Assembly: GCA_907165135.1 (NCBI GenBank)
Contig: OU015566.1
Coordinates: forward strand, 13,268,001 to 13,332,000
Direction: 5' to 3'
Origin: Oikopleura dioica
Taxonomy: Eukaryota > Animalia > Chordata
Length of the DNA: 64,000 nt
The translations under genes were made by a program, and so were the position numbers. The notes below the pieces were generated by a model. It was given only the letters and a program-made list of their open reading frames with translations, ran no database searches and had not been told where the DNA came from. This document shows, piece by piece, positions 43,242 through 63,839 of the stretch. The number at the start of each line of letters is the position of its first letter. Within the stretch, counting starts at the first letter, position 1.

Positions 43242-46200
43242 TTATTGATTGTACTCTGCGTCGATCTCGCAAATGAGATCCATGATCTTGGGCATCAGCG
43301 ATGGAAGTTGATCGTAGGAGTCGATGTTGAAAACGTACTTTAGAAAATCGATCATTTCCGGTTCAAAGAGAAAACTGTTTACCTGTGGATTGCCCGAAAC
43401 TGATGCCATTTCGGTTTTTGAAGCTTCACCGACGCCGATGGTAATGTAGCGCGTTGTTTTGTCAGTTCGAATTCGTCGGACAACAGCGTCCAACGCAGAT
43501 GCGGAATAAGTTTTCTTTGCTAAAATCAGCCGTCAAGGATTGCGAAAATAAAACTGAACGTACAGGCTGTGAGGATGGCGATGCCAGGCTTGTCAGGTCT
43601 TCGACCCATTGCCTCAAGGAAGGAGAAATTGACGAGGAATGCGAGAGCTCGCTCGATTCGCAAGTCTCGGCCGCTGAAGTTGATGCTGTCGACTTTTGAG
43701 AGAAGAGTTGGCTTCGGACTTGTGGCGGAATCAAGGAGGAAAACTGACGGTGACACTTTTTCTCCTGAATAACCAGCAACGGTGACCTAGAAAAGTGTTA
43801 AAACTCCATTTTATGGCGAAAAACTGTACCTTTGCACTGGAAGCGCCAACTTCGAAAGAATCAATCATCTCCTTCGCAAATGCTTTTGTGGCTGCAAGAC
43901 CGGAATCACCAATATCAACGTTTGTATCGAGCAACAGCGCCAAATCAAAGGTACCAATCGGGGGACATTTCACTGAATAAGGGTTCTCTTCCTTGATTTC
44001 AGAAAAAAAATTACCTCCAACACAGCTGAAGCTTCCCTTGGTGTCTTCGCATTTCTCAGAAGCGGCGCAGGTATGAGCACCAGTCGCGCACTCGTCAATA
44101 TCTAAGTAGAAAATTTAATAAATGAAGGATTATTTAACGATCTTACTCATGCAAAGCATTCCATTGCCCTTGTATCCGTCCTTGCAGGCGCATTCGAAGC
44201 TTCCAACAAGATTAGTGCACGTAGCGTCAGGATGGCAAGCTTGGGACGCGCACTCGTTGATATCCTCGCAACCATTTCCACGGTCTTCGTAGCCGTTGGC
44301 ACAGGCGCATTTGAATGATCCGATCGTATTGGTGCACATGCTCGCAGACTCGCAAGTATGTCGCCCGTTAACGCATTCGTTTTCATCCTGACAAGCTCCT
44401 GGATTTCCTTGGAAACCAGTTTTGCAAGTGCAGACGTAGGCGCCAACAGTGTTTGTACAATCAGAATCGGCAGCGCAAGGAGACGAGACTTGGCATTCGT
44501 TGACATCGGAGCATTGGAATCCGTTACCGGCGAAACCAGCTTTACAAGAACACGTGTACGCCTGGAAGGTATCCGAACAGACAGCGTTGACATTGCACTT
44601 ATGAGTTCCTTGAGCACATTCATTGACTGCCACGGGTCCTCTTTCTGCAATTGTCGTTGTGGAAGTCGCGTAGCTGGTTGTTGTCGTATCGTACTCGGTA
44701 GTCTCCTGCGCAGCCATCCAACTGTTCATTGTTGTTCGCGAAGTAGGTCGAGTTGTAACTGGTCGATTGGTAGCAACAGCAACAATTGGCTTCATTGGTG
44801 GCATCCATCTTAGTGGAGTTGTAGCTGGTTGTGTTCTTTGAGTCGTTCTCTGAGTAGTTGGTGCTCGAGTAGTGACAGGTCTGCGAGTAGTGATTGGTTT
44901 TCGAGTTGTTCGAGGGACGAAAGCAGGCTTGGCAGTGGGCTTCTGGAAACTTGGCTTGGCCGGACTGTTGGAATTGAAGAAGCTTCGAGACCAAGTACTT
45001 GTTCCTGGCTTCTTCGGAGCAACAGATTGCGCTCTTCCTGGCAGGAACGCTTGATACTGTGGTCCTGCTGGTTTTCCAAAAGATCCTGGTGATTTTTGCT
45101 CTTGCTGAGTTATTATTGGAGCTGTTGCTGCTTTTGGAACACAGTAGCCAGTCGGTGTCATTGTCTCGTACATTCCACAGATGCACTCGAATTCTGTATT
45201 CGACAGTCGAGAGCATTGCTGAGTGGAAAAACAAGGGCTCGACTCACATGGGTCGATTTCTTCGCCATCTTCATCGGCCGATCCAGTGGCGCTGGAGAAC
45301 TGCATCGCCTCATTTCGAGCTTCTTCGATTCGTTGAGCGCGGACCTCGGCCGTGTTGAAGCATTCTTTGCCGTCTCCTTCGTAGCTGTCAAGACAAGAGC
45401 ACTCATACGAGCCAGGGGTGTTGGTGCACTTCGCAGCGACGTGACAATCGTGAATATCAAAGGCGCATTCGTTGATATCAGCGCAAATATTTTCGCCATC
45501 GCCTTCGAATCCTTCCAAGCACTCACACTTTGCCTCGTGTTTCTTCCATCCCGAGATGACCTTGCACTCAGCGTTTTTGTGACATTTCTCGTGGCGGCAA
45601 ACGTCATTTACACATTCGTCTTTTTGATTCTTTGCGTAGCCATCAGCGCAGACGCATTCGTAGCTGCCTGGGGTGTTGCTGCAGACTGTTTTAGGAATAT
45701 CGGAACAAAGGAGAGATTTTTCGAAGCATTCATCGATGTCCTCACATTTTTCAAAGCCGTTGCCCTTGAATCCGTCTTTGCAAGAGCATTGGATTGTCGC
45801 TTCGTCTTTCGGAACGCAATCAGCATTCTCAGCGCAAGTGGAGTTACCCATTTCTGGGCAAAGATCCTTGACGCAGTTGATTCCATCGCCAAAGTATCCC
45901 TCTTCACACTCGCAGGTAAAGTCGCCAGGTGTATTTGTACACTTTGCGTTTGGCGAGCAATTGTGCTTTCTGGTCGAGCACTCGTTGATATCGATGCATT
46001 CAAAACCGTCGCCGTAATATCCAGAAGGACACTGGCAGGAGTAACCGCCGCCGAAGTTGTGACAAGTGGCAATGGCTGCGCAATCGTGTTGAAGAGAGTA
46101 GCACTCGTCGACGTCGACACAGGTGCGTCCGTCGCCCTTGAAGCCGGACTTGCACTTGCATTGGAAGCTGCCGACGCGGTTGATGCAGAAGGCCCCTTCG

Positions 46201-49200
46201 CCGCAGTTGTGAGTGCCGAGAGCGCACTCGTCAGCATCTTCGCAGACAATGCCGTCTCCTTCGTATCCTTCTTCACAAGTGCACTGGTATGATCCGACTG
46301 TATTCTGACAAGTGGCCAGCGAGCTGCATCGGTTGTTTTCTGCCTTGAGACATTCATTACGGTCGGTGCAGCTGTAGCCATTGCCCCAGAAGCCGTCCTT
46401 GCAAGTGCATTCAGAAGTAGTGGGCGACGTGGCCTTGCAATCGGCATTCACGTGACAAGACGCATTGTCGCATGCTTTCGAGGGTTGGCAGTCGAATCCG
46501 TCGCCGATCATTTCAGGCGGGCAGCTACACTCGTATGCGCCAGGAGTATTGACGCACGTGGCGTTGCCGTGGCACTCGTGCATTTCCAATCCGCACTCGT
46601 CCAAATCCTCGCAATAGAAACCGTTCCCGCGGAAGCCAGCATTACATACGCATGAAGCATCGTTTCCGATTCCCATGCAGAAGGCGTCTGGGTGACAGTT
46701 TTTAGTTGCACAGATTCCGGGAGATTTTGCGGGCAAGCAGCTGTCGCCGTTTTGTTGGAAACCGTCTTCGCAAGTGCACTTGTAGGAGCCAAAGGTGTTG
46801 GTGCAGCGCATATTCGGCTCTAGATTTTTATGAAGGGTCGAAAGAGCATATAAAACTTACGGCTGCAAAGCGTGGTATCACGGCATTCGTTATCATCAAC
46901 GCAGGTTTGTCCAGAGCCAAAGAATCCCTCCTTGCAAGTGCAAATGAATCCACCTTCTGTATTGGCGCATTCTGCCTGTTCATCACAATTGTGACCTCCC
47001 TCGATGCACTCGTCGATTTCAATGCAAGTCTTGCCGTCTCCCTAAATTCCTCGTTAGACTCGAAGATTCCTAGCGGTTTCCGCGGACAGATGGAATGTGA
47101 ACTCCCGTTCGGTGGCATTTTTATAATGGAAGAATGGGACTTTACCTTGAATCCTTCGGGACAGGAGCATTCGTACGAGCCACGAGTGTTGCGACAAACA
47201 CCGTATCGAAGATCGCACTCGGCCGTGCCTTCAGCGCATTCGTCGACGTCTTAAAATAAATTCATATTAAGGGCAAGACACCGAATTTTCAATCTTATTT
47301 CTGCTCGAATTTAACAAGCAAACACCCTTGTTCTTGCGCTCAAAATTATTTTTAGAGCACTTTCTTGTTCCCTTCTTCCTCAAGAATTGGGGTCTTTGAT
47401 GACCTGATAACATATATTTTCGACAGAAAACACTTACCATCGCACTTGAGCTGGTCGGAACTCGAGGCCCATTTCCCACGCCAGTCGCATTTGCGCGAAG
47501 TTTCGCCGGAAACGCGGCGGAAGCCCTCAGTGCAAGCCATTCTGAAATCGAGTTTTAGTATGTTCCACGCCCTGTCCACGTGTCCTTCAATTAAAATCTG
47601 AGATTTCAAGAATAGAAGCCAGGCAGTCTCGTGTTTTGGGTACTTACTCGCACTCGGTCGAGGTACAGGAAGTAATGTCAATGACAGGAATGTCGCGGAG
47701 GGCGGAGCACTTCGATTTGACACACTGCTCTCCACTGCCGAGGTAGCCAGCAGCGCAGATGCACTAAAACGATCAAAAACTGTCTTAAAAAACAGGGTCA
47801 AACCTTGAAGGAGCCAGCAGTATTGACGCATTTTTGACCAACAGACTTGCAATTATGGCTGCCATTATCGCATTCATTGATGTCAACGCATTTTCCTTTA
47901 ATAGAAAATTAAGCAAACATTGCCTTAAAAGATCAGAACTGTAGAAAGCTGAGCTCGGCAATCTGTGCAGAAAACCTGAGTCAGGGTCTAAAAGAGCTGA
48001 AATGAAAAGCCGCGCAGAGGCTCTTTTTAAAACGAAGCCGCGAAGCGGCTTGGCTAGAATTCTTTATAGATTGTAATGGTATTATTCGCTGTGCGGCTTT
48101 TCATTTCATCTCTTTCAGACCCTGACACAGGTTTTCTACACAGGTTGCCGAGCCCAGGTAGAGAGAATACAAACCTGCAGAGACTTTGAAGCCATCCTTG
48201 CATTTGCACTTGTAACTGCCAACAGTATTGACGCACTCGGCACCAGGACAAGCTGATCGAAGTGAAATTGTTTTTCCTAAAAAAAAGTTTTAAGCCGAAT
48301 AAAGAGGGATGGAAAATTTCTAATGACGTCGAAGAATGGCTTTTGCACCAAGACTGGGTCCGATAATGGTCATTATCAGGAGGACTTAGATGGATTCAGA
48401 AGCGAATCATCCAAAACAGAATAAGATAAAAATTGAATTAAATTGATAAAATGAAGCGGTTTAAAATAATTGAGTGTTGCAATCCAACAACTCCATTTTC
48501 TGGAAATGGCATGCAAATTTCGACCTAAACGTCTTGATTTCTTACCGCTATCTGAATTTCGATTAGCTCCAAATTGATCGACGTTTTTCGTGATTTTGCT
48601 ATTGGGCCAAAATAATGAAAAGAAGGGGGAGGGATTAAATTCAATATTCAAGAATATTTTTGTGGCGCATCTGGTGAGTTCGGAAAAGAATCAACCAAAT
48701 AATAGTTAAATTTTAGGAGATAAAATGAGTGTTGTCAAGCAGCAGCTCAAAATCATCATGAAAGTCATCTTGATGCTCAGAATTGACTGTAATGAAGTAT
48801 CTTACCGCTACTTGACAAATCATAGAGTAGTAGAAACGTGTCGTTGCTGTCCAACTCTTTAGAAATATAATAAAAAAGAAAAGTTAAAAAATTATTGCAA
48901 AAGGCAACACAACCTGGGCGCGATGGCGAGTTATTAAAACAAACATTACATCAAATTCTTTATTTTCTAAAACGGCGGCACGCCATTTGAGCTCAATTAC
49001 ATAGTTGTAAAAAAATATTATCTATCTTTGTTTTGGAAAATGTGGCGGCGTACTAATTTAATTTATCATTATTACATGTTATTAAATACAAATAAGATAA
49101 CATCGTTTATTCAATAACCCAGCTTAAAGTTAGAGTCTCTAGCCCAATAATTCTTTAGATAACCCCTAAGAGTAAGAAACAACTCGCTTATGTCAAGAAT

Positions 49201-52200
49201 GAAGCGTCGTTTGTGAATTCTAGCACGCTCTTAGGCAAGAAGCTGCTGGATAATCGCATTCCGGAAATCTATTTTCTGACGCTGCTGATTCTCAACAGGA
49301 TGTGCCCCTGGCTGACCGAAATCGACACGGGCAAACGAGAACAATCCGCGCTGCCTTGATATCCTTCTTCATCCCCCGGAGGGTTAACCCTCTAACGCGG
49401 CTTTTTTGGCATTATACATTTTACAACTCAGACAAAATTGCATCATCAAATCTGATTAGTATCGTGCTGACGACATGGAAAAATAAAAAAGATGAAAAAT
49501 TTCGCGTCGATTTCACGCACAAGCCAATTTTTTTATCATCGAGTTGTGGTGCAATTATCTAAGCACGTAAATTGGCCGATTACTCGCGCCGCACATGCTG
49601 TGGCCGCTGCATTCTTCAGCTTTAAAACTCAGAGACCATCGGACAGATTTGCTTTTTTACCTTTCTTAGGAGTGACCATTTCGCGCAGGACTCCTACAAT
49701 GCACTCGTCAACGTCTTCGCAAGTTTTTCCGTCGCCGGAGTAGCCATCTTTGCAGCGGCATTTGAAGCCTTTTCCGGTGTTCTGAAGGGATTTTAAGCAA
49801 ATGACACCCTTATTTTCAGAATTATTCAGGGAAATCCTGACTGACTTACAGTAATTTCACTTTAATTACTAGCATTCTTACAATCTACTCAATTAACTCC
49901 TACAAAGTATCGCTCTAATCGTGCATTTCATTATCTACTGCCCTAGTACTGTCAGTTGTTCACTGAAGCATCCAATGAACGAGAAAATGCGCACACTTAC
50001 CAAGCAACTAGCATTGACGTCGCAATCGTGAAGCCCAAGAGCACACTCGTCTCTTTCCCTGCAGACGCCACCGGAGCGGAAGTGTCCTTCTTGACATTGG
50101 CAGGTGAAACCGCCATCGCGATTTTCGCACTTTTCGCCTGCGTTACTGATTCAAGGGTTTTCGCTTTCATTCAATATCAGAATTTCTCCCCGAAAATTCT
50201 AGGAAGGGTCCTTAGGCTTTTTTGAGAAGTAGAAACCCTTAACAATTGTGCGTGCCCATGGTGCACTCGTCGATATCAACGCAAGTATCCGGAGCATTTT
50301 TCGGAGCAAAGAAACCTCCATCGCAAGCACATTCGTGTCCTCCCTTTTTGAGCGGAATACAGACTTTCGGGAATCTACAGTTGTGTTCTCCAGCGAGACA
50401 AGCATCGACCATTTCACACGTGAGTCCGTCGCCAATGAAACCTAAAATGAAGCTTGAGAAGCTGGCGCTTTGATTGAGTTCGTATGAGTGAAAAGAGACG
50501 TTTCTAATCTGCAATTAAGACGATCAATCAGACAGGTATGTTGTAAATTTTTTGTAATATTTTTCATTATTTATGATATAAAAACGACATAAGATCAGAT
50601 GGAAAAGCCGCAGCTTATTTCAAGATCCATCTGTTTTTTTTCGGATTACAATATCAATTATTAATTGACAATTAAGTCCCAGACGAAGAATATGAAACCA
50701 GTTGATTGATATGTTTTTTTCTTGAATCCATCAAGGTGCCTCCTTATATAATCGTTTGACGACAAAGTTCAGCTGTAGGCAGATTTAATCTCAACTCCCA
50801 AATCAATTTCAATAGTGTCTTATTGAGAACCAGCTGATTTCCGTCATCGTTTATATAAAAAAAACATAATAGAGAGGTCAAATGAATCAAGCCGTCAATC
50901 GAACTTTGGCAATGATATGTTACCATGTACAGTTTCTTACTGTACTTGAAATGAAATGAGAGAAACACGTTTTTACCTAATTAAGGATTTATCAAATGCC
51001 CGTTTTACAAGTGTGATAAAAAAAGAATCCGCTTACGAAATCAAACACGTCGGCCAACACGCTTTAGCTGTGTTCCGAAATTTAGGGAAATCGAAAAACG
51101 ATTAATTACCAGGTTTGCAGGTGCACTCGTGCCCGCCAATAACGTTCTTGCATTTGGCGTTTCTGTCGCAATCGCTGCCCATCGAACTGGCGCATTCGTC
51201 AATGTCGGAGCAGTCGCGCCCGTTTCCTTCGTATCCGGACTAGTGAGGGCTGAGGGCTACCTGCCACTTAGCAGAGAGAGTGGGAGGGGCGCTTGAATTT
51301 GGTAACGCCGTAGTTTGACGATAACCGTTCGTTTTCTAACAGGCTTCATTTTAGTCGTTTTTATCGATTTCAAAAGAATAATATGAATAAATGCTGAGTT
51401 ATGGCCTCTTATATCATCTTCAATTCATTCAAAAATTTAAGAATATTAAAAAGCAATTATAGATTCAAAGCTTAGATTTTCCATAATTTGAGATTGCGAC
51501 ACTGAAATTACATCCGGATTAAATTATTTTAAATTGCGGTTGCCAATTAAGAAAGAATAATTTAAGGATATTTTCTTCAAAATCTTACATAAACCTTGGT
51601 AACTTATCAATGCCAATTTTCTCTAAGAATATTTTCTATTTCGCCTTTTTTTCCGAAAAATCACGGGCGGACAGATTATCCTCAGCCGTTCCTTGCATTT
51701 GCATTGGAAGCTGCCCTCGTTGTCGATGCAAATCGCGTGCTCGTGGCATCCTGCGAGTCCCTCGGCGCATTCATCGACGTTGACGCATCCGACGCCGGCG
51801 CGCGACTTGAATCCATCCGGACAAGCGCACACGAACGTTCCGTGCTGATTTTTGCACTCAGCGCCTGGCGGACAAGGATTTGGAGAGCAACGATCGGGCT
51901 CTTCGCAAGTGACGCCGTCCTTAGTGAATCCAGCGGGGCAAGCGCAATCGTATCCGCCTTCAAAGTTGACGCAGACGGCGTTGGTTCCACAAGAGTGTTC
52001 GTTGTTTTCACATTCGTCGATGTCGGTGCAGCTGAAGCCGTCGCCGGTAAAGCCAGTTGGACAGGAGCAGTCGTAGCTGCCAACAGTGTTGGTGCATTTA
52101 GCAGAAGCGTGACAGGTATGAGATCCATCTTCGCATTCGTTGATGTCTACGAAGAAATTTTTATCGAAAGAAAAATGACTTTTGTCACGAAAAAAGACTT

Positions 52201-55200
52201 TTTTTTCAATAAAAATGACTTTTGTAACGAAAAAAACACTTTTGTCACGAAAAAAGATTTTTGTCACGAAAAATGACTTTTGTCACGAAAAATGATTTTT
52301 GTCACGAAAAAAGATTTTTGTCACGAAAAATGACTTTTGTCACGAAAAATGATTTTTGTCACGAAACAAGACTTTTGTCACGAAAAAAGACTTTTGTCAC
52401 GAAAAAACACATTTGTCATGAAAAAAGACTTTTTTCAGGAAAAAACTTTTGATAATACGCTCCGGGGCGCTGATCTTTTTGAATTTGGCCAATTTTCGGC
52501 AGTAAAAATAGTAAGCTGTTCCAACAAAGGGCGCTGAATAAAATGCTAATCGATCTGATTTGGATCGCTCCTCCGCCACCGCCGGAGTCAGCAGGGCCCC
52601 ATCTAACGACGTGTGTTTTGCGTCACGATTTTGATTCCAGCTAAACAACTCTAACCGCCCGTCAGCGTCAATTTATATCTTCTTGCGGTGAACTTGCCAA
52701 AAACAAAAACCAACGCATTTTTTCCCAACTTGAATGCAAAATGGTACGTGAAGCAAAAGATGGCTTACCGTTGCAGGAAGCGCCATCGCCTTCAAATCCC
52801 GGGGCACAGTTGCACTTGTAGCTGCCTAAAATGTTGACGCAGGAAGAGTCTTTTGGACAAGTTGCGACTCCGTTTTTGCACTCGTTGACATCTTAAAATA
52901 TATGAATAGAAATAGGTAATTAAGAAGTCAATTAGCCGTCAATTTATCTGAAGGAGGTACCATCTTAATCTTATGAAAACATCAAAATCACTGATTTAAA
53001 ATCTTGATTTCGACCAATTAAAACATTATTTTAAATAAAATAGCAGCTAAAATTAACGATATCTTGATGAATGGATTGACTATCTTGATGGAATTTAACT
53101 CTCTTAATTGACTCCTTTATTTTAATTTCTAAGTTCTCGAATATATCAACGGCTTTTCTTACGCTCTTTTTGAATAAGTTTTTCTCTTACCGTAGCATCC
53201 AGTTTTCGGATTTCCACTGTATCCAGGCGCGCACTGGCACTCGAACGAGCCGGGCTTGTTGACGCATCTGGTTCCCTTGGCGTTGCAGTTGTGGTTGCCA
53301 GTGGCGCATTCGTTGATGTCCTCGCAGGCGAGGCCGTCTCCTTTGAAGCCAGCTCGGCAGGCGCACTTGTGGGAGCCGAGTGTATTTGTGCAAATCGCAT
53401 AAGGAGAGCATTGATGAGTTCCAGCAATGCATTCGTCCTGGTCTAAAGGGAATTCGTTAGTTTGACCAATCAAAAGGCTCGATGGCAGATTTTCGCTATC
53501 ACAAGACATCGATGTAGCGCCAAGTTATTACTCGGCGTGGCTTTTCTATCTTATCAATTATTAGCTTTCCGCTTTGGGTCGAGAAACGCGATAAGGTGCC
53601 TTTCTAAAGTTGTTCTTTCCCAATCCATCTGGCTATTCACATGCGATAAGTCCGATTCCTGCCGAGTCGGATGAACCGGCGAACGTGAGTGCTCTCTTAT
53701 CAGAAAATTGGATTGTTTTATTTTTTATTTAGAAATATTTTTTCTGTATTCTATTTTTAAGAATGCCCATTAAAATAAATCGATAATCAGTATTTATTAA
53801 TTTTTTTATATTTATTATTTAATTTATTAAAAATAACTATTTAATTTAATATTTTGATTAAAAATGAATATTTATAAAATTACTCTCTTTGGTCCTTTTG
53901 AGCCTTTCTTTTATGGAGAAAGTAGACCATCGAAATTTTTGCGTCGCGGAAAGAGTAATTTAACGACACTTAGTTTTGGTGGAACGCTACTTGTTGAGGT
54001 ACTGGTGGTGCTGGTGCAGCCAGCAGGCGGTGTGGCTGCTTTGGTGCCGAGGGGGCCACTCGTGAAAACTCGCGGCGGGCAGCTTACGAGCGCCCTCGTT
54101 CAGCGCGTGACGAATCGTTTTCCCGGGCTTAGGGCCACCCACCGCTCTCTTGCAAAGCTAACATCTCGATTTAAAAAAATGGAAAACTAAGAAAAGACGA
54201 TGAAAAGCAGAGATTTCCTGACCAACTCGAAGAGGAAGAAGTTATAAAACAAAGAGAAATCATCGAAGAAAAGAAAAACTAAAACTCGAGCTTGAAATTT
54301 CAAAAAATAAAAAGAAAATTATGGGCGATTTTTTCACAATTGTGCTGATTGGCATGGCCATCAGCGTGGCAGTTTTTGCTTTTGGATTGATTCAGGTAAG
54401 ATCTTCCGTTTCTTTTCGACCCTTTTTTCCCTTTTTTTTGTCCCAAAATCGATTATTGAAATTATTTCAGAAATAGTTCCTTTGACCTTGATTTAGTTAA
54501 AGACTATTTAAAATGCATACAGTACATTTTTCGACCTCCGTCTCTTTTGATCCAGATATGTAATCGACTTTGCATGTTTTGAGAAATAATACGCGGCATT
54601 TACGGTAAAAATAGACTGGCGGGTGCATGTGATGCTTTGAATCGCAAATACGCGAAAAACTTGCTTATCATTGCGCAACAGTCTTCTTACTTTGTGTCCA
54701 TATTTTGGACACTCATAACTTGCTTTTTATAAATAAAAAATAAACTTGAGCATTTCTAGTTAAAACCTAAAAGCAGTCTTTCCCTTAAGTTTACTGTAGC
54801 AAAATCGCTTATTCACCCAAATTTTTCTAGCAGCCCCGAAGACGCCAGCTGACAACGACCCAAAAAACCGCTGCCGAGATCAGAAATCGGCACGCCGTGC
54901 TGACCCCTGCACGCATTTGCACAGGAGTGACTACCCAACCGCGGGCTGAGCTCACAAACATCTAAACCCCAAAACCAGTAGCTCTCTTTGTATATTTTTC
55001 CTACTTCGAAAAGACGTCTATCTCCATCCCACCCGTATTTCTTACAATTTTTTATTACCCATAACTAAGGAATAAAAAAAAACGAGGACCATGAATGTCA
55101 TGAAACAACGAAAATTAACCCTGTTTGAGTTTCAATCTAATGCAAGAAACAAGGTGACTTTTAGACCCCCACCCCCCTTTACTCCCCCCTAAACCCCCCT

Positions 55201-58200
55201 TCAAAATTCAGACTCGATTTTCGCCGATTTGGGCTGTTTTGATTGGATCCCGGTACTGGCAACTGCGGGTCCCACGTGACGATTCAAATTTTCGACGCAA
55301 AATCGACTCGAAAGCCAATTTTTCGACACGGAAAGAACGAAGAAAAGATTTTTCAAAAAAGCCTGTGTCAAAAAACTGAAACTGAACTGCATGTCGTAGA
55401 AATTGCACAGTTAATAAATGTGCAGATTTGTACATAACAAAACTCAATTTGTATTTTTTACCTCTGCATCCTTTTCGAAGATCACCAATCATGCCCTCCT
55501 TGCATTTGCATCTGTAGCCTCCTGGAACATTGATGCATTGAATATTCGGCTTTCCAGTGCACTGATTTTTGACAGCGCACTCGTCAATGTCCTCGCATTC
55601 GCCTCGGAAAGCACTTCCAAGATCTTTGAAGCCTTTCTTGCATTTGCATCGATGAGTTCCGACGTAGTTCTTGCAGGACGCATTGGAATCGCACTAGAAA
55701 GTAGGTCAATTTCGAAGTTTTTAGAAAAAGAAGAAAAAATGCTAGTCTTCAAGAAATTCATTCACTCATTCATTCATTCATTGAGAGTCAGATACCTTGT
55801 GCATTCCAGCTGCGCACTCGTCCATGTCAACGCAAAGTTTGACCCCGTCGCCTCGGTATCCTGTTTTGCACTGTTTTAAGGGTCACGACTTTCATCCATC
55901 ACGTAGAGAGGGGTTATCATTCGAGCCTATAATTCGAGCCATCCAATATCTCTAGAATCTGGGCTAGTGGTTAGGGTAAGGGACTGGAAACTCTTAACGG
56001 GGGTTCAAAGACCCCCGGTTTAGGCCTTAGGTAGGGGGTCCCGGGGGGGGGGCGTACCCCCCTGGGTTCGGTTTAGCGTTAGGGGCAGCTCGATTGATAA
56101 CCCCCTACTACCATCCATCATCATACAAAGAAGAAGTCTTTTTCGACCCTTTCCTTGCATCTGTATCCCCCAGGTTCGTTGAAGCACTCAGCTCGCTCGT
56201 GACAAACATCATCCTTTTCGCACTCATTGATGTCCTCGCACTTCCACCCGTTGCCCTTAAAACCATCGATGCACATGCAACCGTAGCCGCCCGGTTTGTT
56301 CCAGCACTTGCCACCGAGAGGCGTGCAGTTGTGATCGCCAGTTTCGCACTCGTTGATATCCTGCGCCAGGTTACGCCACGGTCGGTCGATTTAAAAAACC
56401 GCATCGTGGCTGTAACCTCCGCCTTGCACGTAAAGCCGTCGCCCTCGAAGCCCTTTTTGCACTCGCAGGTTACGCTGCCCACGGTGTTGGTGCAGATCGC
56501 ATTGTCCGAGCAGGGGTTGTCTTGAACGCATTCGTCCACATCTTGAACATTTTAATTAGCTTGAACTCAAAAAATAAAAATGACAATTAGAAAATTTTTC
56601 AAAAAAAAAACACATCTCTTAAAAAAACACACACTTCGGAGGGATGGTGTCTGGAACCGAGAAAAAAAATTTCGACAAATTTTGCGTGGGCGGCTACTCG
56701 GTTGCTGATTGGCCGATTTTTCGAATTCAGGCTTCTGATTGGTCGAAAATCTCCACGTAAAATTTGTCGAAATGTTTTTGTCGGTTCCAGACACCTCCCC
56801 GCATCGAAGAATTTCTATTGCATAAAAACATGCATGATTCTCTGCACTTGGCGTTCAGACATCTCTTTTTAGAAGGTCTCGATTGCTAAGTGCGATAAAC
56901 TGGCGCTCGGGTCGCACGCGGCCGACATGGTGTCGGTGGCGTTGGTGTCGCAGGTGCTGCAGGTGCGAGCGCCTTTTCTGGGACTTCTTCTAGGCTTATT
57001 TGGACTGAGCTTGTGGAGCCGTCACAAAATATTCGCCCAGTCCAAATAACCATCACGCAGGCGCAAAAATAAACCCCGCGCCGCTCCTTCTACTGTTTCC
57101 CCGACCGCACATTACGTAAGCAGCGAGCTAGAGGCACAGTGAGTCGCGGGCAGCCGCCAATCTCGCCACAAAGTGCGGTAATTATAAAACTTATTTCTTC
57201 CGGGTAAAAAAGTTTTTTCCCTCATCCGGAAAATTTCAATAAAAAAAACGGATAAAAAAGTGATCGTTTCCAGGATTTTTTTCAAGAGGGATTTCCAAAC
57301 TCCTGCTCCTGGCCTTACTCCGACAATTATTCACATCTGATAAGCTCTAACTCTGTGCTGGAAATGCAAATCTGAAAAGAAGGTTGTTAATGAAGCTTGA
57401 CTCAGATGCAGTGCATCTAAAATAACCTCGGTGTTTCTTTTTGTTTCGTTGCTTTTGATAGGGTTAACGTGCTTGCATAGGCTTATTTCCCGGGTGGTTG
57501 CTAAATCCGCTAGGAAGGGGGCCACGGAAGCTTTTAAAATCCGTCCTGGGCGGAGCAAACTCGGCCCAACCCGCCAAAATTGACGAAAAATACCGTAATT
57601 TAAAAAAGGGAGTATCCGTCAATGGAGGTTTGAAATCATAATTGCTCGTTTCTTGTTTGAAAATTTAGGAAGAAAGGATCGTCACGTCAGGAAAGACACG
57701 TTCAACGAGCAAATCAGATAACGCCTGACGGCTGATAAAAATTGGCGACGCTGAAAGGGCAACAAGGACTGACGCCGCTTCCTGGAAAGCTCGAGATCGA
57801 GTCAGTCTTGATTTCTGCTTGGGATATTCTCAAATGAAATTTGTGAAATTTAATGTGATAAAGATGAGCTACATGTAGCCATAAACTCGATCAGATAATT
57901 ACTAGCTCCTGACAAACGGTCCTTGATTATCCACCCCATAATCTCTTGCCTATCCATCCGATCCATCCGACGCTCAAGCCGTTCTTGAGCACCCTAGCCT
58001 GTTTTCAACTCGATTGATGACGACGCTCCTTCGAACGTCGTCTCAAGCCTTTTGCGTGCTTCATATACTTCTTTTTCAGCAAGCCAGTCGTCATATAATT
58101 GAATTTGCTTCTGACGCAACGCGATAAGTTCCGATTTACGGGACTTGAAAGCTTTCCAGTTTATCTTTTTTCTTTTATCTCCTCGCTCGTCATCTAAAAC

Positions 58201-61200
58201 AAAAAAAAATAATAAAAATATTCTCATTGCAATAATTATCAAAGAAATTTTTCAAAAAAAAACTTCTAACGATAGGAAGTCTGGCCGGTAATTAATTCAT
58301 TTTTCTATTCTATTGACTCACACAATATTCGTTTCAGCTCGTCATCATCCTCATCCTTCTCCGCGACAATGGTACTCCATGGACGCAAAGTTGCCCTTGG
58401 AGTTGTCGTTCTCGTTGTTGCTGTTGTTTTTGTTGTTGTTGGCACTTTTGAAGTGTTTGCCATTTGTCTTCGTCGGAGTATCTGATCGAGCAGGCTTCTT
58501 CTGTCAAAAGTCGAAGAAGGAGCTTTGAAAGACGTCGTCGTTGTCATCGTTGTTGTACTAATTGTTGTAGTTGTCGTTGAGCTTGACTGAATCATTTGCC
58601 GATGCCGCATGAGTCGCTGAAGAAGACTATCTCGTCCATCGGGAATTTGTTCTGGTTGAAGTATTTCTGGCATCGTTAGTGTTGTTGTGGATTTTGTCGT
58701 CGTTGTTGATTTTGTTGTTGTCGAAATTTTTGCGGCTGCTGTTTTTCGCCTCTGAAGCATGAGTTTCTGAAGAAAACTAGCTCTTCTGTCGACGGATTCT
58801 TCCGTAGTCGCGATCTCAGAGTATGAAGTTGAAGGCGGAATCGTTGTTCTCATTTGTTGTAATCTATTCATCCTCATTCTCTCCAATAATTCTTTTCGTT
58901 TGTCAATGTATTTCGTCGATTGGGAAAATACAGGCTTCGGAGTTGAAATAATTTCGTCCTTGTCCGGAGCAATTAATTCACTTCGAAGCGTCATTATATC
59001 TCTCACAGAGAATGTTTTTCCGCCCTTCGCGAGCTCTTTTAGTCTCTCTTTCATCCTCATTACTTCTTGAATCGACATTCTTGACGGCGGAGCTCCTGCT
59101 GGTCGAAATTCGGGAGGAAGAACTCGCACTTTACTGTTTTCTTCCATTTCAAGTCGGGCGCGAATCGAGCTTTTATGCGCCAACCCGTGCCCAAGTTTCA
59201 ACTCGATGGTTGGTTGTGTCGTCGGGATCGTTGTTGTTTTCACAGTTGTAGTTGTAGTGACTGTAGTCGTCGTCCTCGTAGTGGTCGTCCACCAGGAAGT
59301 TCTCGGAGGGCCAACATTGATATCAAGGAGGAAATCGCCTCCGCCAGAGGCTTTTTCATAAGCAGCAAGAACTCTTTGATCCCAAAAAACAGTCGCGTTT
59401 CCTATTTATTGAACTTTCAAGAAACGATCTTTTAGTAATAAAAACCCGGAAGAAATAGTTTTGTCCATATTCCTCAAATTTAAAAAAAAACAAATTTCCA
59501 GATTTTCCATATTCTGGTCGATAAAATTGCCCTGTTTTGACATAATTTTGTAAAAAAAAAATGATTTACCGGCGCAGCTTGAAGTTCCATCGCCATAATA
59601 GCCTGGGAGACATTCGCAAGCGTATGTTCCTGGATAATTGACGCAATGGCCCAAGCTGTGGCATCGTGGTCGGATGGTATCGCACTCGTTGACATCGTCA
59701 CATCGAGTTCCGTCGCCATTGAAGTCGATGAAACCGTTGGGGCAAGTGCACACGTGGCTACCAATGGTGTTTGTACAGGAAGCGTGTTCATCGCAATCGG
59801 ATTTGCCAGTGAGACACTCGTTTACGTCAGAGCAGGAGAAGCCGTCGCCAGTGTAGCCCTTTTTGCACTCGCATTTGCCCATGTTGGCGTAGTTTACACA
59901 TTCACCCATGGGACCGCATTTTGTTCCTGTTTTGGGTTAGGCTTTACGCTTTAAAATACTAGAAAGAAAGTCTCTAACCCTGAGTCCTTTGAGCAAGCAC
60001 CAATCAGTGCCAGTCGAAGCCTGAGCAAATGCACCGTCAGAATAGACATTGTAAGTTTCAGCGGCAACAACGAAGAAGTAGTCTGTGTTTCCATCAAGTC
60101 CTTCGATAATCACTTCGTTGAGGATTCCATCAACGAGAGCTGGCGATTCTGGGTACGCGTTTGGAGCATGGGGAAAGAAAGAGATTCGGTAGTGTTCTCG
60201 ATTACCGCCCGAGTGATTCCAAGTGAGCTTGACTTTATTGGCAGAAATGCTTTCTGCTTCGACGTTGTGGGGATCTTCAGGAATGGTAGCAAAAAGCATT
60301 CGCTGGGGAACAGATTCTTTCTGCCCGACCATTGAGTAAAGATTGGCTTCGTAGCGGGTTCCAGGAAGAAGATCGTCAAGTTGGAATTTGTTACTTTGAC
60401 CGGAAACGATTTCCATTTTTGCTTCGAGTTGAGTTCCGAATTTGAGTTGAATCGGCGAATCAGGATCAGCTACCGGCTTTATGAGGATTACGATCAACAG
60501 AATGTTCTTGAAAAAGTATTACACTAAAGAGCGTCAAGCGAATTCAACAGAGCATGAACAACAATCTTCTGTATTTATCGGCATTCCGGCATCTATACTA
60601 CGTATGTACAGAGGCAAAAGTTTGAGCCTTTGAAATGTTACAATCTCTTACGATGGGCCAAGGACCATGGTCGATGGCTCTATCTTGTAATCAAATTATT
60701 TTCGAATCCTGTAGAAAATTCTACTGTATTATTTTTTTTTGTTTTTGAATATTCATAGCCAGATAGTATGGATCGAAATTTATCCTTGATTCAAAAATAA
60801 TTTGCCAGTAAGAAGAAGTATTAGGGCCACCGTAAAAGATTGTAACAATTTGAAAGACTCATACTTTTATCTTGTGTACATAGTCTTTGCTCTACAACTA
60901 TCAGCTATAGAATGTATACTTTGTTACTCTGGTATATTGTCAGAAAACATGCTTTAACAAATTAGATATTTCTGTCGCACTCCCTAAAGGTTATCAGGAT
61001 AGTGTACCAGAATAAGCTATAATTTAAGGTAGTTTATACTCAATATATGAAAATACAAGATGTGCTATGTAATTTAAGAATAGAGGATAAAAATCCCTCC
61101 CTTGTATTCAATCTTGTATCGCTCTCGTTTGCCGGCTGGATGTTGCCAGAACAATTCAGCCGATGTAGCATCCATGTTTCTTGTTTCAAACTTAACCGGG

Positions 61201-63839
61201 ATCGAGGATGAGGGCAAGGATGAGCTGGCCATTCCCGTGCTTGTCAATCCTCCTCCGCCGGCAGCGTTGAAGCCGAACATATTTCTATTCTGCATCGTAT
61301 TCTGCTGTTGTCGCGCGTCAACAAGGCCATTTTCAATTTGGAAGGCAAGTTTGGCAGCTTGTCTTTCTGCTTCACGCATTTTTTCTTCCTTTGCTTCAGC
61401 GTCGTATCGTTTGGCCCAAGTAGCGATGGAAGCTTGCTGATATTGCGTGAGTTGTCCGTCCGAAACGCGGTCAGAGTAGTAAATTGGTCGTTCGCCGGGA
61501 TTCGTTGTCGCTGCGCCAGCTCCTCCAGCGAAAGGATCAGTACCGAGCCGAGAAGTCATTTGGCCGGACAAGCTTGTCGTGAGAGCTGCACCATCTCGAA
61601 GCTGGACTTCGTAAGACGAATATGGAAGAGCTTCACCAAGGGCTTGAGGGCAATTATCAGCGTAATCATTGTAGTATCCATTCCACGAAATTCCAACTTG
61701 AGGGTCAAGAGATCGATCATCAAGAGTCAATGTGTAGAGACTCGCGTCTTTGCAACTCGCTGGAATGTCGCTTGAATATTGAGAAGGCTGGAAATCAACT
61801 GAGAAGCCAATGTATCCATGTTCTTCCTGCCAGCCTATCTGCTCGAGCTCAAAGTAACCACTGTTGATATTGGAGTTGGCGAGGACGACACAAGCGTGCC
61901 AAAAGTTGATACGCTGGATGTTGCAGCCGGCTGGAACTTGAACTTGGAGACCAAACGGAGCAAGCGGCTTTGGATTCGGAAGGAAAAAGTGGCCATTCGC
62001 GCCTTGAGTCCAGGAGAGAGGACCGGAAAGAAATTCCATCGATGGTGTTGTCGATTCAGGAACGTAAACGGCTCCGGAATCGCCAAGCAGAGCAAGCTGC
62101 GTGTCTCGATCTGGGTACATAATTTCACAGGTATCGAGAAGTGCGGAAGCATCAATGGGATCGTTCCATTCGTAAAGTGAGAAAATGTAAGCATTGGCGT
62201 CCAGGCAGCTCATTTGATCAGCCTGAGGAAATTTGATTCGCAAGCCGATGAATTCCGTTCCCAAGTCGGTTCCGTTCTGGTAGAGAAGGAGATTGGCGAC
62301 ATTGTCGCCATAAACAGCTGTGGCGTTTCCGTCATTGTTGAGATCGGAGTTGACAGTGTTGATGCAAGCTTGATAAGTGAGAACTGTTTGAACATTGCAT
62401 CCTTCAGGGAAGGCGATCTGCAATTGCCACGGGTTCTCCGCTGGTGGCATGGCGTCCGGAAGCCAGATTCGCATCCAACCGACTTCTTCACCGACAGAGA
62501 CCCATTCGACCTCGAGATCGCCGGAAGTATGACCCGGTCCATCGTAATTATTGACCATCAGATCGAGGAAAGCTTGATCGATGACTTCATCGCCGCCGAG
62601 AATAATGTTCTCTGGATAAGCTGGATCTGTGCTAGGAGGAGTCCACGGAAGCTCGCCAGGGCACTTGTCTGGATCAGTTGACCACTGGAGAGTCATTCCA
62701 TCGATGTTATCCGAAGCGTGGCTGCCTCGAGCGACAAGGGTGAGTGAGTAGGCAGTTTCATCGAAGCAAGCAGCCGAGCCGCCCCAGTAATTATTCTGAT
62801 CAAAGCTCTGATCAGCTTCAAAGACAATTCCAATGTTTTGATGATCATGGTGCCATCCAACTTGGTAGACATAAAAAGTACTGTTCGACAAGCTAGAAGC
62901 GTAGGGGTCCATACAACCGTGCCAGATGTCTAGAGATTGGAGCTGACAGCCAGGAGGGAATTCGAGAAGGACTTGCCAGGCTCCAAGAGGTCGTTCGCTT
63001 GGAAGGTTGAGTTTGATCTCGCCTCCATGCCCCCACTGTCGGATAAAGTCGACAACTGGCTCCGTGATTGTATCACATCGAGTACCAAAATAGCCGTCTT
63101 GGCAGTCGCATGTAAAGGTGTAATTGGTGTAGTCGGAAATGCAGATTCCATCGTTAGCGCAAGTCTTATCGTTGCAGTAGTCGACGACATTTGTTCCGGG
63201 TGGAAACGGCCAGGAAGAGAAAAATTCAGAGAAATCCTCCGTGGGAAGAGAGATTCCGCTTGGGTACTCGTCGTAGAGTTCTCGTTCCCGAATTCCGGCA
63301 ACAGTCGCTTGGAAAAGAGCATTGGCAACGAGGGAGGGTTCATTGCGCGTGTAATCCTTTCGGTTGTCCTCCCAAAAGCCAGAAGTAGCATCTGGGCCGC
63401 CCATAATAGCTCCTTCGAGTGTGAATTCATTTGGGGTGTATTTGTCCTCAAACATGCCCCAACCACAATCTTTCCCAATAGGACACGCCGAGTCTCTGTG
63501 ATGCGGTCTCGTCGGTGGGTTGTGCCCGTAGCCGACCATGTAGCTCCGCTCACCAGCGCCAAGGACGTCGATAACGAGTTGTTTAGCAAAGTTGACGAAG
63601 TCAGTTTCAGTCTGGCCCGACACGACGTGATTGGCAGCGTAGAGGCAGATATAGGCGACACCAGAAGTTGCGCCAAAGTTGTGCCAGTCGGTCATTCGGA
63701 GAAAACCGTCGGCATTGTATTGGGTCTGGTAGTTAGTGCAGAAGTCGATGATCATTTGTACTCCAGGAGCGCTTGTATCAGAAGTCAGCAAAGCGTGGTA
63801 AACCATCACGGCAATGGTTTTATCATCAGTGGAAAATTC
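43242..63839 (-). CDS. Giant modular protein (5' truncated): GH9 glycoside hydrolase C-terminal half-EGF-3x CBM2-like repeat-2x FN3-3 EGF-Thr/Arg-rich linker-long cbEGF array with one CCP module-vWA
   Basis: GH9 signatures [30 protein letters not shown] and GAIMGGPD...[11 protein letters not shown] (63288-63839). About 40 EGF modules counted by eye, most of the DxxEC calcium-binding type. v[10 protein letters not shown]...YITIGVG at 43242-43975. An FN3 and an EGF are each split across introns and completed only by joining the exons. A few junctions are unresolved, so a single transcript is likely but unproven. Confidence 0.75.
47949..48157. mobile_element. Palindromic MITE-like element in an intron of the EGF array gene
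   Basis: Arms 47949-48017 and 48089-48157 are inverted repeats (62/69 by hand). The spacer contains the small hairpin AAGCCGC-GAA-GCGGCTT. Confidence 0.75.
50675..50930 (-). mobile_element. Possible decayed non-LTR retrotransposon reverse-transcriptase fragment
   Basis: One frame with an internal stop: [13 protein letters not shown]...[11 protein letters not shown]...[15 protein letters not shown]. It resembles, in order, the RT motifs PLLFxIYINDL, W..xLxLN and LG..D..HI..L. No YADD motif; weak. Confidence 0.35.
52171..52450. repeat. Minisatellite, about 19-nt unit TTTTGTCACGAAAAA(T/A)GA(C/T), roughly 14 copies
   Basis: Directly visible tandem array in the intron between EGF exons at 52147 and about 52770. 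Confidence 0.95.
54321..54965 (+). CDS. Possible small single-pass membrane protein gene, antisense in a 2-kb intron of the EGF array gene
   Basis: Exon 54321-54395 [25 protein letters not shown] ends at CAG|GTAAGA. A candidate last exon at about 54831-54965 is open in two frames, with AATAAA near 55071. The internal exon structure is unresolved. Confidence 0.45.
55166..55199 (-). other. G-quadruplex-forming motif
   Basis: The minus strand reads G6-TTTA-G6-AGTAAA-G6-T-G5: four long G runs with short loops in otherwise AT-rich intron sequence. Confidence 0.7.
55904..56110. mobile_element. About 207-bp element bounded by terminal inverted repeats
   Basis: Left TAGAGAGGGGTTATCATTCGAGC versus the reverse complement of the right end, TAGTAGGGGGTTATCAATCGAGC. 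G/C-run-rich interior. It fills most of the GA-AG intron 55871-56153. Confidence 0.7.
55952..56024 (+). pseudogene. tRNA-like (degenerate tRNA or SINE-head) sequence inside the TIR element
   Basis: 73 nt with A-box-like TGGGCTAGTGGTTAGG, stem-loop AAGGG-ACTGGAAA-CTCTT, T-arm GGGGG-TTCAAAGA-CCCCC (B-box-like), and imperfect acceptor pairing CTAGAATC/GGTTTAG. The loops are 1 nt too long and the D stem pairs poorly, so it is not a functional tRNA. Confidence 0.45.
56646..56795. mobile_element. 150-bp MITE-like element with about 44-bp terminal inverted repeats
   Basis: GGTGTCTGGAACCGAGAAAAAAAATTTCGACAAATTTTGCGTGG versus the reverse complement of the right arm, GGTGTCTGGAACCGACAAAAACATTTCGACAAATTTTACGTGG. 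Two CTGATTGG motifs inside. Confidence 0.8.

Follow-up and report, generated by a model that had tools for sequence, protein, structure and literature searches.

The window, i.e., the whole 64,000-nt stretch of Oikopleura dioica DNA analysed here (contig OU015566.1, positions 13,268,001-13,332,000), carries on its minus strand a large modular sequence that combines a glycoside hydrolase family 9 (GH9) domain with an array of EGF modules and a vWA domain. As judged from the sequence, positions 63838-43242, together with about 440 codons beyond the window end, are one O. dioica gene, GH9-17 (g3627). It is predicted to encode a modular matrix protein that is secreted and has roughly 3,700 residues, or about 4,100 with an optional cassette. 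The N-terminal part comprises a signal peptide, a CBM2-like module, GH9, an EGF, three CBM2-like repeats, a linker and two FN3 domains; it is followed by about 39 EGFs, most of them calcium-binding, among which lie a Sushi-like module and a Pro/Thr linker, and by a C-terminal vWA domain. The modules are all known, while the combination and the degraded catalytic base of the GH9 domain are new. A preprint from 2026 that deals with the cell types of O. dioica lists the gene (GSOIDG00018115001, named GH9-17) only as a partial GH9, with neither an EGF array nor a vWA domain being mentioned (bioRxiv 10.64898/2026.03.31.715263).

Gene structure and sequences used for comparison

The exon chain was built with a dynamic-programming gene finder as a scaffold and was corrected by hand against a distant relative, the Bergen O. 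dioica sequence and RNA reads; the gene finder had fragmented the Thr-rich exon, missed GG and GA donors and skipped the middle vWA exon. Borders of the array exons are predictions, except for two that have read support. The curated chain, which extends from 63838 to the stop codon at 43244-43242, contains no internal stop, whether or not the Thr-rich exons are included. Its length within the window is 3,253 codons without and 3,678 codons with these exons, from each of which an RNA-corrected intron (see below) takes two codons, and 21 exons of the chain lie between 56541 and the stop. Forty modules display an EGF pattern, 28 of them with the calcium-binding start D/N-x-D/N-E/Q-C. An earlier note, made from the window sequence alone, had proposed a single gene of >20 kb that joins GH9, the EGF array and vWA, with about 40 EGFs linked at phase-compatible junctions. 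The count and the open chain bear out the latter claim, and ORF (open reading frame) continuity in relatives agrees with transcript joins on the former.

Several sequences served for comparison. The Bergen O. dioica scaffold FN654682 aligns collinearly with the window, with nucleotide identities of 70-89%, and the top database match to the GH9 ORF is the Bergen protein CBY35818 (P0001; 89% identity). The cluster of this protein also contains CAG5108090.1 (P0158) and CAG5108088.1 (P0159), i.e., the OKI2018_I69 chr1 models g3627.t1 and g3627.t2. Residues 477-1396 of P0158 (the last 920) are 100% identical to the window translation. The window thus stems from the OKI2018_I69 genome or one indistinguishable from it, and P0158 was used as the source of the N-terminus, of which 476 residues are encoded outside the window. 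From related species there are four ORFs of Tara Oceans metagenomes (P0002-P0005), which are 54-59% identical, while a distant relative, represented by two independent Logan assemblies from different runs (L007 and L008), is 29-38% identical to the window gene. Transcript evidence was obtained from RNA runs of a different O. dioica lineage, in which reads are 90-95% alike and depth is near zero, and from a 112-residue protein (P0156; entry ERR1712131_403772) of the MERC catalogue, which was assembled from 775 Tara eukaryotic metatranscriptomes.

The earlier note had not recognised the architecture, and no description of it was found among the proteins or the literature searched. In a library of 1.84 billion representatives, no relative longer than 1,357 residues was present among the best 150 of 778, and among these a single other cluster shares the GH9, the EGF and the three repeats (P0007; 1,357 residues, 29% identical), which is encoded on the contigs L007 and L008. 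The longest annotated form found has 1,434 residues, and none of the papers retrieved on Oikopleura and GH9, cellulase or oikosin reports such a fusion. Coordinates of the features are collected in Table 1.

Table 1. Features of the GH9-17 gene in the window, in the direction of transcription
Feature	Position	Strand	Evidence and remarks
GH9, C-terminal part	63264..63838	-	Pfam PF00759, HMM (hidden Markov model) 308-442/444, E 9.4e-24; exon begins 63838, phase 1
Single EGF right behind GH9	63066..63185	-	Pfam EGF E 5.3e-05; six-Cys pattern; all homologues
Three CBM2-like beta-sandwich repeats	61632..63044 (63044-62634, 62537-62109, 62048-61632)	-	mutual alignment, AF2 (AlphaFold 2), Foldseek, VIA
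Gly/Gln/Ala-rich linker with charged helical stretch	61188..61604	-	no Pfam family; all Oikopleura-type orthologues
Two FN3	59987..61199	-	Pfam fn3 E 4.4e-13; FN3-2 ~60281-59987, ends ..DWCLLK
cbEGF (calcium-binding EGF) 1-3 exon	59570..59926	-	Pfam EGF_CA/EGF_3; donor G|GTAAAT, phase 1; Bergen ORF continuity
Optional Thr-rich mucin-like exon, 1,080 nt, phase 1-1	58322..59401	-	R-x-x-L-L-x-x-L basic helices repeated; conserved splice sites
Second optional exon, 195 nt	57999..58193	-	67% amino-acid identity to Bergen, mostly third-position changes
EGF array, 18 predicted exons	44147..56541	-	Pfam EGF_CA/EGF_3/cEGF; stop-free chain; L007 collinearity
Array exons 1-6	56541-56423, 56360-56154, 55870-55796, 55693-55462, 53442-53191, 52891-52769	-	predicted; first intron read-backed
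Array exons 7-12	52146-51692, 51239-51110, 50441-50244, 50137-50001, 49781-49661, 48252-48175	-	predicted
Array exons 13-18	47895-47804, 47763-47648, 47541-47438, 47249-47146, 47041-46861, 46819-44147	-	predicted
Sushi/CCP-like module, two exons, mid-array	47438..47763	-	weak Pfam Sushi E 0.044; four-Cys + Trp pattern, same place in L007
Pro/Thr/Arg-rich linker in 2,673-nt exon	~44634..45140	-	read from ORF; lineage-specific, insertion relative to L007
Last EGF and vWA, three exons	43242..44101 (44101-43830, 43786-43564, 43519-43245)	-	introns 43 and 44 nt; stop 43244-43242

Splice junctions and the Thr-rich cassette

The GH9-bearing ORF (63872-61077, minus strand; 932 codons) holds first GH9 and then EGF, and the first FN3 domain (FN3-1) is split by a phase-0 intron at 61100-60477, which has the donor GG in the window and GA in Bergen, and the acceptor AAAG. 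In P0002-P0005, one unbroken ORF extends from GH9 across the three repeats and both FN3 domains into the EGFs. Because these ORFs cross the intron point, the join within FN3-1 is real, as had been proposed for the exon at 60476. The next intron (59986-59927; GA..AG, 60 nt) is missing in Bergen, where ..DWCLLKGTTCGPMGEC.. sits in one ORF that is continuous over FN3-FN3-EGF1-3; the suggested join of DWCLLK to the following EGF thus stands as well. Public annotations fail at the GG/GA intron: P0001, P0158 and P0159 read through at 61100 to a nearby stop, and the next Genoscope model begins at an internal Met within EGF1. Non-canonical introns of the types GG..AG, GA..AG and GC..AG are all found in this gene, two of them backed by ORF continuity in relatives and one by twelve reads, and further such donors are predicted at 56153, 51691 and 57998. 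The same annotation error likely splits other large modular genes in the O. dioica genome.

An independent view of the gene is given by the distant relative. In both L007 and L008, a GH9 ORF is followed after 115 nt, on the same strand, by an ORF of 2,338 residues. The GH9 ORF stops within FN3-1, and the second ORF opens with the remainder of this domain and continues through FN3-2, 38 EGFs (37 EGF_CA stretches by Pfam), one Sushi-like module and, at the end, a vWA domain (E 1.1e-19). The predicted downstream protein of the window is collinear with the 2,338-residue ORF of L007 from end to end (37.7% identity over 1,775 columns), far more than chance would give, and an odd EGF with a long insert is found at the equivalent place in both chains. 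Because an FN3 domain straddles the gap and a single ORF covers all downstream modules, there is little room for two genes. This comparison shows that the predicted secreted architecture, i.e., a cellulose-directed head, a cbEGF rod and a vWA foot, is conserved across a deep split.

Within the array, the largest exon matches Pfam EGF_CA with E 2.4e-89. The terminal vWA domain, which had been noted from the ORFs, is real and is spread over three exons: the pieces map to consecutive Pfam HMM positions (1-42, 41-109 and 118-166; 15.5, 19.3 and 13.8 bits), and when joined they align with the vWA domain of L007, where a single Pfam match covers it. The DxSxS motif of the metal-ion-dependent adhesion site (MIDAS) is absent, its position being occupied by D-T-N-V-D in the window and by D-T-H-T-Q in L007. 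No TB (8-Cys) domain was found in a Pfam scan of the large window ORFs, in which small window exons were not scanned singly, and of the complete L007 ORF.

The exon with EGF3 is spliced directly to the array, the first exon of which begins at 56541 behind a CAAG acceptor. Two reads (X4) join 59572 to 56539 with four letters in between, which correspond to the final two bases of one exon and the initial two of the next, with two synonymous third-position changes (GCC GAT to GCT GAC). These reads thus stem from an orthologous mRNA of another lineage that was spliced exactly at 59570|56541 (..SSCA-DVDEC..). In addition, P0156 matches the genomic contig L006 with 100% identity across EGF2-3, after which ..FCN-DIDEC.. 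leads into a module that is off this contig; within the window, this last module is most similar to the exon at 56541 (68.8%). Within the array, twelve reads (X1, X5) skip 62 nt, i.e., a GC..AG intron at 56422-56361 (3-nt ambiguity), which yields a canonical ..C-K-D-I-N-E-C.. link and improves on the GT donor at 56416 picked by the gene finder. A pile of reads at 58680-58713, with loose ends on both sides, was discarded as low-complexity cross-matching. The earlier note had expected RNA to connect EGF3 to the array by way of a linker, with a junction at about 59570/59340; the connection was found, and the position was not, i.e., 59570 is joined to 56541 and the linker is skipped.

If the array belonged to a gene of its own, a start would be needed upstream of 56541. 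No conserved Met followed by a hydrophobic stretch is found between 58330 and 56400, in accord with the earlier note, which saw no internal signal-peptide start. The only candidate, at 58227, is a translated intron pyrimidine tract that is absent in Bergen. The alternative that two genes adjoin here, perhaps in an operon, i.e., that GH9-CBM-FN3-EGF3 forms one gene with the Thr-rich exons at its end and EGF-vWA forms another, independent one, is very improbable and has been largely refuted. It is favoured by the separate models of Genoscope and OKI2018, by the stop at the end of the exon at 58193-57999 in both lineages, by well-conserved non-coding blocks and CCAAT-like motifs upstream of 56541, and by the Tara scaffold L002, which has no EGF array within 7.5 kb downstream of the Thr-rich ORF; here, the intron would be long or a scaffold gap may hide the array. 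However, the annotations break inside domains (by read-through in the middle of an FN3 and at an internal Met in an EGF), the second gene would have no signal-peptide start, transcripts link EGF3 to the array, and the ORF of L007/L008 that extends from FN3 to vWA completes the FN3 started in the GH9 ORF.

Between the EGF3 exon and the array lies the Thr-rich region, which comparison of lineages and transcripts shows to be an optional in-frame cassette; its two exons are taken to be alternative exons. The first has a frame of 366 codons, with an acceptor (ATAG|GA) directly behind an in-frame stop and the donor T|GTGAGT; the T|GT donor and an immediate divergence beyond it are common to Bergen and three Tara species. 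The protein sequence of this exon shows 58% identity with Bergen and 37% with Tara, and has a core that is well preserved. The second exon lies 128 nt past the first in the window (43 nt in Bergen) and ends either at a stop (57996-57994) or at a phase-1 GC donor that leads to D-V-D-E-C at 56541. The position of the stop varies (TAG in the window, TGA four codons later in Bergen), while CAG|GC is conserved. Since all phases are 1, inclusion or skipping of either exon keeps the frame. The Thr-rich exon is skipped in both junction reads and in P0156, and L007 lacks an equivalent of it; neither in the RNA runs nor in P0156 was the cassette found in a read or an assembled protein. The idea of a Thr/Arg linker as a fixed part of the rod was thus abandoned in favour of a symmetric 1-1 cassette that is skipped in the transcripts seen and absent from the distant homologue.

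It is also conceivable that two forms coexist, i.e., that a short isoform (head, FN3, EGF1-3 and mucin cassette, with the stop at 57996-57994) is made beside the long one and may even be the commoner of the two. The cassette exons are under coding constraint, with conserved splice sites in four taxa, both O. dioica lineages have a stop after the second exon, and the onward donor is a weak GC. Against this stand the lack of any read or assembled protein with the cassette and the fact that the stop position is not conserved while CAG|GC is; furthermore, GC, GA and GG donors are used elsewhere in the gene. On balance, such a coexistence is unlikely, if far less so than a pair of separate genes.

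Two other treatments of the cassette were discarded. The Thr-rich ORF as a nested independent gene was rejected, as conservation begins at the acceptor upstream of any Met and there is no signal peptide. When the Thr-rich exon was used to look for homologues, proteins with Thr runs dominated the output, and even the Tara ORFs that are detected by tblastn were missed. In the Tara sequences the cassette is much longer (L005 8149-9228, 576 residues, followed by a second ORF of 359 residues; L006 4440-6557, 705 residues) and consists of many basic amphipathic ..AFL.RL.. copies with Thr runs between them, i.e., a fast-evolving repeat.

The GH9 domain and the CBM2-like modules

The GH9 exon of the window opens at 63838 behind a phase-1 TTTAG acceptor, and the N-terminal half of the domain therefore lies outside the window. 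In P0158 the whole domain is present (Pfam HMM 3-442/444, E 5.4e-106) and matches termite NtEgl (1KS8) with E 2.1e-104. The protein also carries a signal peptide (..LISLVNLWISVSAQ) in its N-terminus, a feature that the earlier note had suggested looking for upstream; next comes a module with a weak CBM_2 match, followed by GH9. Both P0158 and P0159 add different exons ahead of the likely true start, Met-Ile-Gly-Ala-Arg plus signal peptide, which encode a basic stretch in one OKI2018 isoform model and an SH3-like sequence in the other. These extra 5' exons look like a fusion with an upstream gene.

Within the window, the PHHR motif and the catalytic Glu in ..DYTRNE.. (aligned with ..DYVHNE.. 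of 1KS8) are kept; here, the Pfam match and the alignment agree with what had been read from the ORF, i.e., the C-terminal half of a GH9 domain. The situation is different at the catalytic base. In P0158, ..GGYYTGGDHVKW.. aligns where active enzymes show ..GGY[FY]DAGD.VKF.. (a motif outside the window), and the base motif is TGGD as compared to DAGD of 1KS8, i.e., the first Asp is replaced by Thr, while the second Asp and the acid Glu are kept. Of the two DAGD aspartates looked for upstream, only the second is thus present. The base motif is IGGD or VGGD in the Tara orthologues and VGGD in P0007, in which the acid Glu is in addition replaced by Gln; the first base Asp is absent in every homologue checked. 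In GH9, both aspartates (D55 and D58 of Thermobifida fusca Cel9A) are described as acting jointly as the catalytic base (PMC4221708). Most other O. dioica GH9 paralogues retain DAGD (table in bioRxiv 10.64898/2026.03.31.715263). A degraded base motif is found in at least two further paralogues, GH9-1 (VDHD) and GH9-16 (DGGG) (SI2 table, same preprint), and non-catalytic GH9 domains may be a recurrent theme in the O. dioica GH9 expansion.

We infer from these substitutions that the GH9 lineage was selected for something besides efficient hydrolysis, most simply the holding of a glucan chain, and the GH9 head probably grips cellulose rather than cutting it efficiently. The alternative is that this one protein works as an endoglucanase with full activity, which is carried on a rigid EGF rod, anchored by vWA, and trims or remodels house cellulose. 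This assignment finds support in the retained acid Glu, second base Asp and HHR motif and in the full-domain GH9 match (E 5.4e-106), as well as in the 2026 preprint, which argues that the length of cellulose polymers in the oikoplastic epithelium is controlled by GH9 enzymes (bioRxiv 10.64898/2026.03.31.715263). On the other hand, Thr takes the place of the first base Asp here, as do Ile or Val in all homologues seen, while most O. dioica paralogues keep DAGD, and the distant homologue P0007 lacks the acid Glu as well. The loss of Glu in P0007 shows that the conserved role of the family does not need hydrolysis. Full activity is accordingly rather doubtful, although it carries slightly more weight than the coexistence of short and long isoforms. 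The tethered remodelling enzyme envisaged earlier is the less probable reading; in view of TGGD and the IGGD/VGGD homologues, a weakly active or inactive head that grips cellulose is the better one.

The three repeats behind the single EGF align mutually and with the N-terminal CBM2-like module. A model of repeat 3 (AF2, 24-row alignment) has a pLDDT of 79.9 and a pTM of 0.78, and the top Foldseek matches are mostly CBM2 (cellulose-, xylan- and chitin-binding: 1E5B, 2CWR, 3NDY_E, 5DHD, 6QFS, 1EXG, 6F7E), with probabilities of 0.9-1.0 and E from 4.5e-3 to 0.06. VIA-align gave Z 7.0-7.1 with 84-91 of 87-107 residues covered, where Z <8 can mean a common arrangement. No Pfam match to the three repeats was found even at E 10 (the curated cut-off of CBM_2 being 24 bits), while the N-terminal module reaches 18.4 bits (E 0.0029) against CBM_2, also below that cut-off, and its Tara orthologue E 0.017. 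Given the middling fold scores and the lack of a Pfam match to the repeats, these are termed CBM2-like rather than CBM2. A planar face with three exposed aromatic residues is typical of CBM2 modules; in the alignment, repeats 1 and 3 share conserved Trp at three positions, and repeat 2 at fewer. A joint AF2 model of all three repeats (7 sequences; pLDDT 55.6) was discarded, and a profile search of the repeats against PDB sequences returned chance matches only.

Possible function and neighbouring features

The best explanation, to which a probability of about 60% is assigned, is that one gene encodes a matrix linker that is anchored to cellulose and has little or no activity as a hydrolase. The head, composed of the GH9 cleft and four CBM2-like modules, would hold cellulose microfibrils at several points, with hydrolysis being weak or nil. 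The cbEGF rod, of the order of 100 nm, would act as a stiff spacer or microfibril-like element, or polymerise in the manner of other cbEGF arrays, and the vWA domain would dock to other matrix proteins. In this way, the whole protein would connect the protein matrix with the cellulose scaffold, either of the larvacean house or of the epithelium by which the house is made, while the mucin-like cassette could provide a flexible glycosylated hinge in some isoforms. A more specific version is offered tentatively, as possible though short of an even chance: in appendicularians, a GH9 with a degraded catalytic base (and, in one lineage, a degraded acid) that has turned into a lectin-like grip may, with four CBM2-like modules, form the cellulose-binding head of a fibrillin-like cbEGF rod with a vWA foot, making up a dedicated chordate cellulose-matrix crosslinker that is older than the split of the two lineages and has acquired a spliceable mucin hinge in Oikopleura.

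Several points weigh against a cellulose-anchored linker from one gene, in addition to the scaffold L002 discussed above. No transcript spans the whole gene, and the direct join of EGF3 to the array is seen in two reads and one protein-level assembly, where chimerism across EGF repeats is conceivable. One Asp in the base might still suffice for activity. The assignment to CBM2 depends on fold scores that are middling (Z ~7), and cellulose binding is a prediction. Furthermore, the gene is not among the named oikosins whose identifiers were compared, and no expression data for it were found. GSOIDG00018115001 is neither among nor beside the oikosin identifiers compared from the preprint table (19, 25, 32, 35 and their list neighbours; bioRxiv 10.64898/2026.03.31.715263), and no hydrolase is named in the main text of the house-proteome paper (PMC3390340).

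The head is best compared to other GH9 proteins. The animal GH9 endo-beta-1,4-glucanases (termite NtEgl, 1KS8; earthworm EF-EG2, 3WC3) have the same catalytic fold, acid Glu and HHR motif. However, these enzymes consist of a catalytic domain with at most one CBM and have DAGD, whereas in the protein described here the motif is TGGD, and matrix modules add about 3,200 residues. Thermobifida fusca Cel9A is organised as GH9-CBM3c-FN3-CBM2 (1JS4). It likewise combines GH9, FN3 and CBM2-type modules in one chain, but in the O. dioica protein the order of modules is different, the CBM2-like modules are beyond Pfam detection, CBM3c is missing and the chain continues into animal EGF, Sushi and vWA modules. 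The O. dioica proteins GH9-1 to GH9-17 and GH9-expansin belong to the same expanded family, many of them with CBM2-like N-terminal modules and Thr-rich linkers. In plants, KORRIGAN is a GH9 enzyme that is needed for cellulose synthesis; it is a competent catalyst that lacks matrix modules and is fixed in the membrane by a transmembrane helix. It offers an analogy only, i.e., a GH9 that is held beside nascent cellulose rather than being freely secreted.

The remainder of the protein resembles known matrix components. Matrilins, AMACO/VWA2 and hemicentin are likewise secreted matrix proteins that combine vWA with EGF repeats; they are without glycoside hydrolase or CBM, and matrilins end in a coiled coil. 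Unlike in these proteins, the vWA domain here is C-terminal and without the DxSxS MIDAS. Long tandem arrays of calcium-binding EGFs are shared with fibrillins and with oikosin 19, although the gene does not encode a fibrillin, because no TB/8-Cys domain was found in the window ORFs scanned or in the L007 ORF. According to the house-proteome paper, oikosin 19 is a fibrillin-like protein with EGFs, a chitin-binding domain and C-lectins, which has been proposed to stabilise cellulose threads of the house (PMC3390340). In contrast to oikosin 19, the carbohydrate-binding part of the GH9-17 protein would be a glycoside hydrolase domain with CBM2-like modules, and the protein would be a more direct version of the same idea.

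Larvaceans rebuild their cellulose-scaffolded house every few hours. To our knowledge, the way in which this cellulose is attached to the house proteins, roughly 80 in number, is not understood. The GH9-17 protein, in which a head directed at cellulose and modules for matrix assembly occupy opposite ends, is a concrete candidate for this cellulose-matrix link. If this proposal is correct, it would also be an unusual animal case of a cellulase domain that has apparently drifted to a non-catalytic binding role.

Some features of the introns were noted in addition. Blocks at 57788-57682, 57398-57317, 57215-56928 (core ~57020-56930), 54962-54831 and 54398-53953, within two long introns, are conserved between the window and Bergen at 84-93%, i.e., equal to or above most adjoining exons, and about 90 nt are nearly invariant. 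They have no codon periodicity and no Rfam match, and may be intronic non-coding RNAs or enhancers. A long and real hairpin is found on the plus strand at 47971-48135, in the intron between the exons 48252-48175 and 47895-47804. Its assignment to plant MIR847, which is the sole Rfam match in 43000-64000, was rejected as due to chance (43.8 bits as compared to a gathering score of 184).

The next gene downstream (41345-36627, minus strand) is a single ORF of 1,573 codons with six VWD stretches, TIL and C8. It is alpha-tectorin-like (cf. the oikosin 30 family), such that two large matrix genes, GH9-17 and this ORF, are arranged head to tail.

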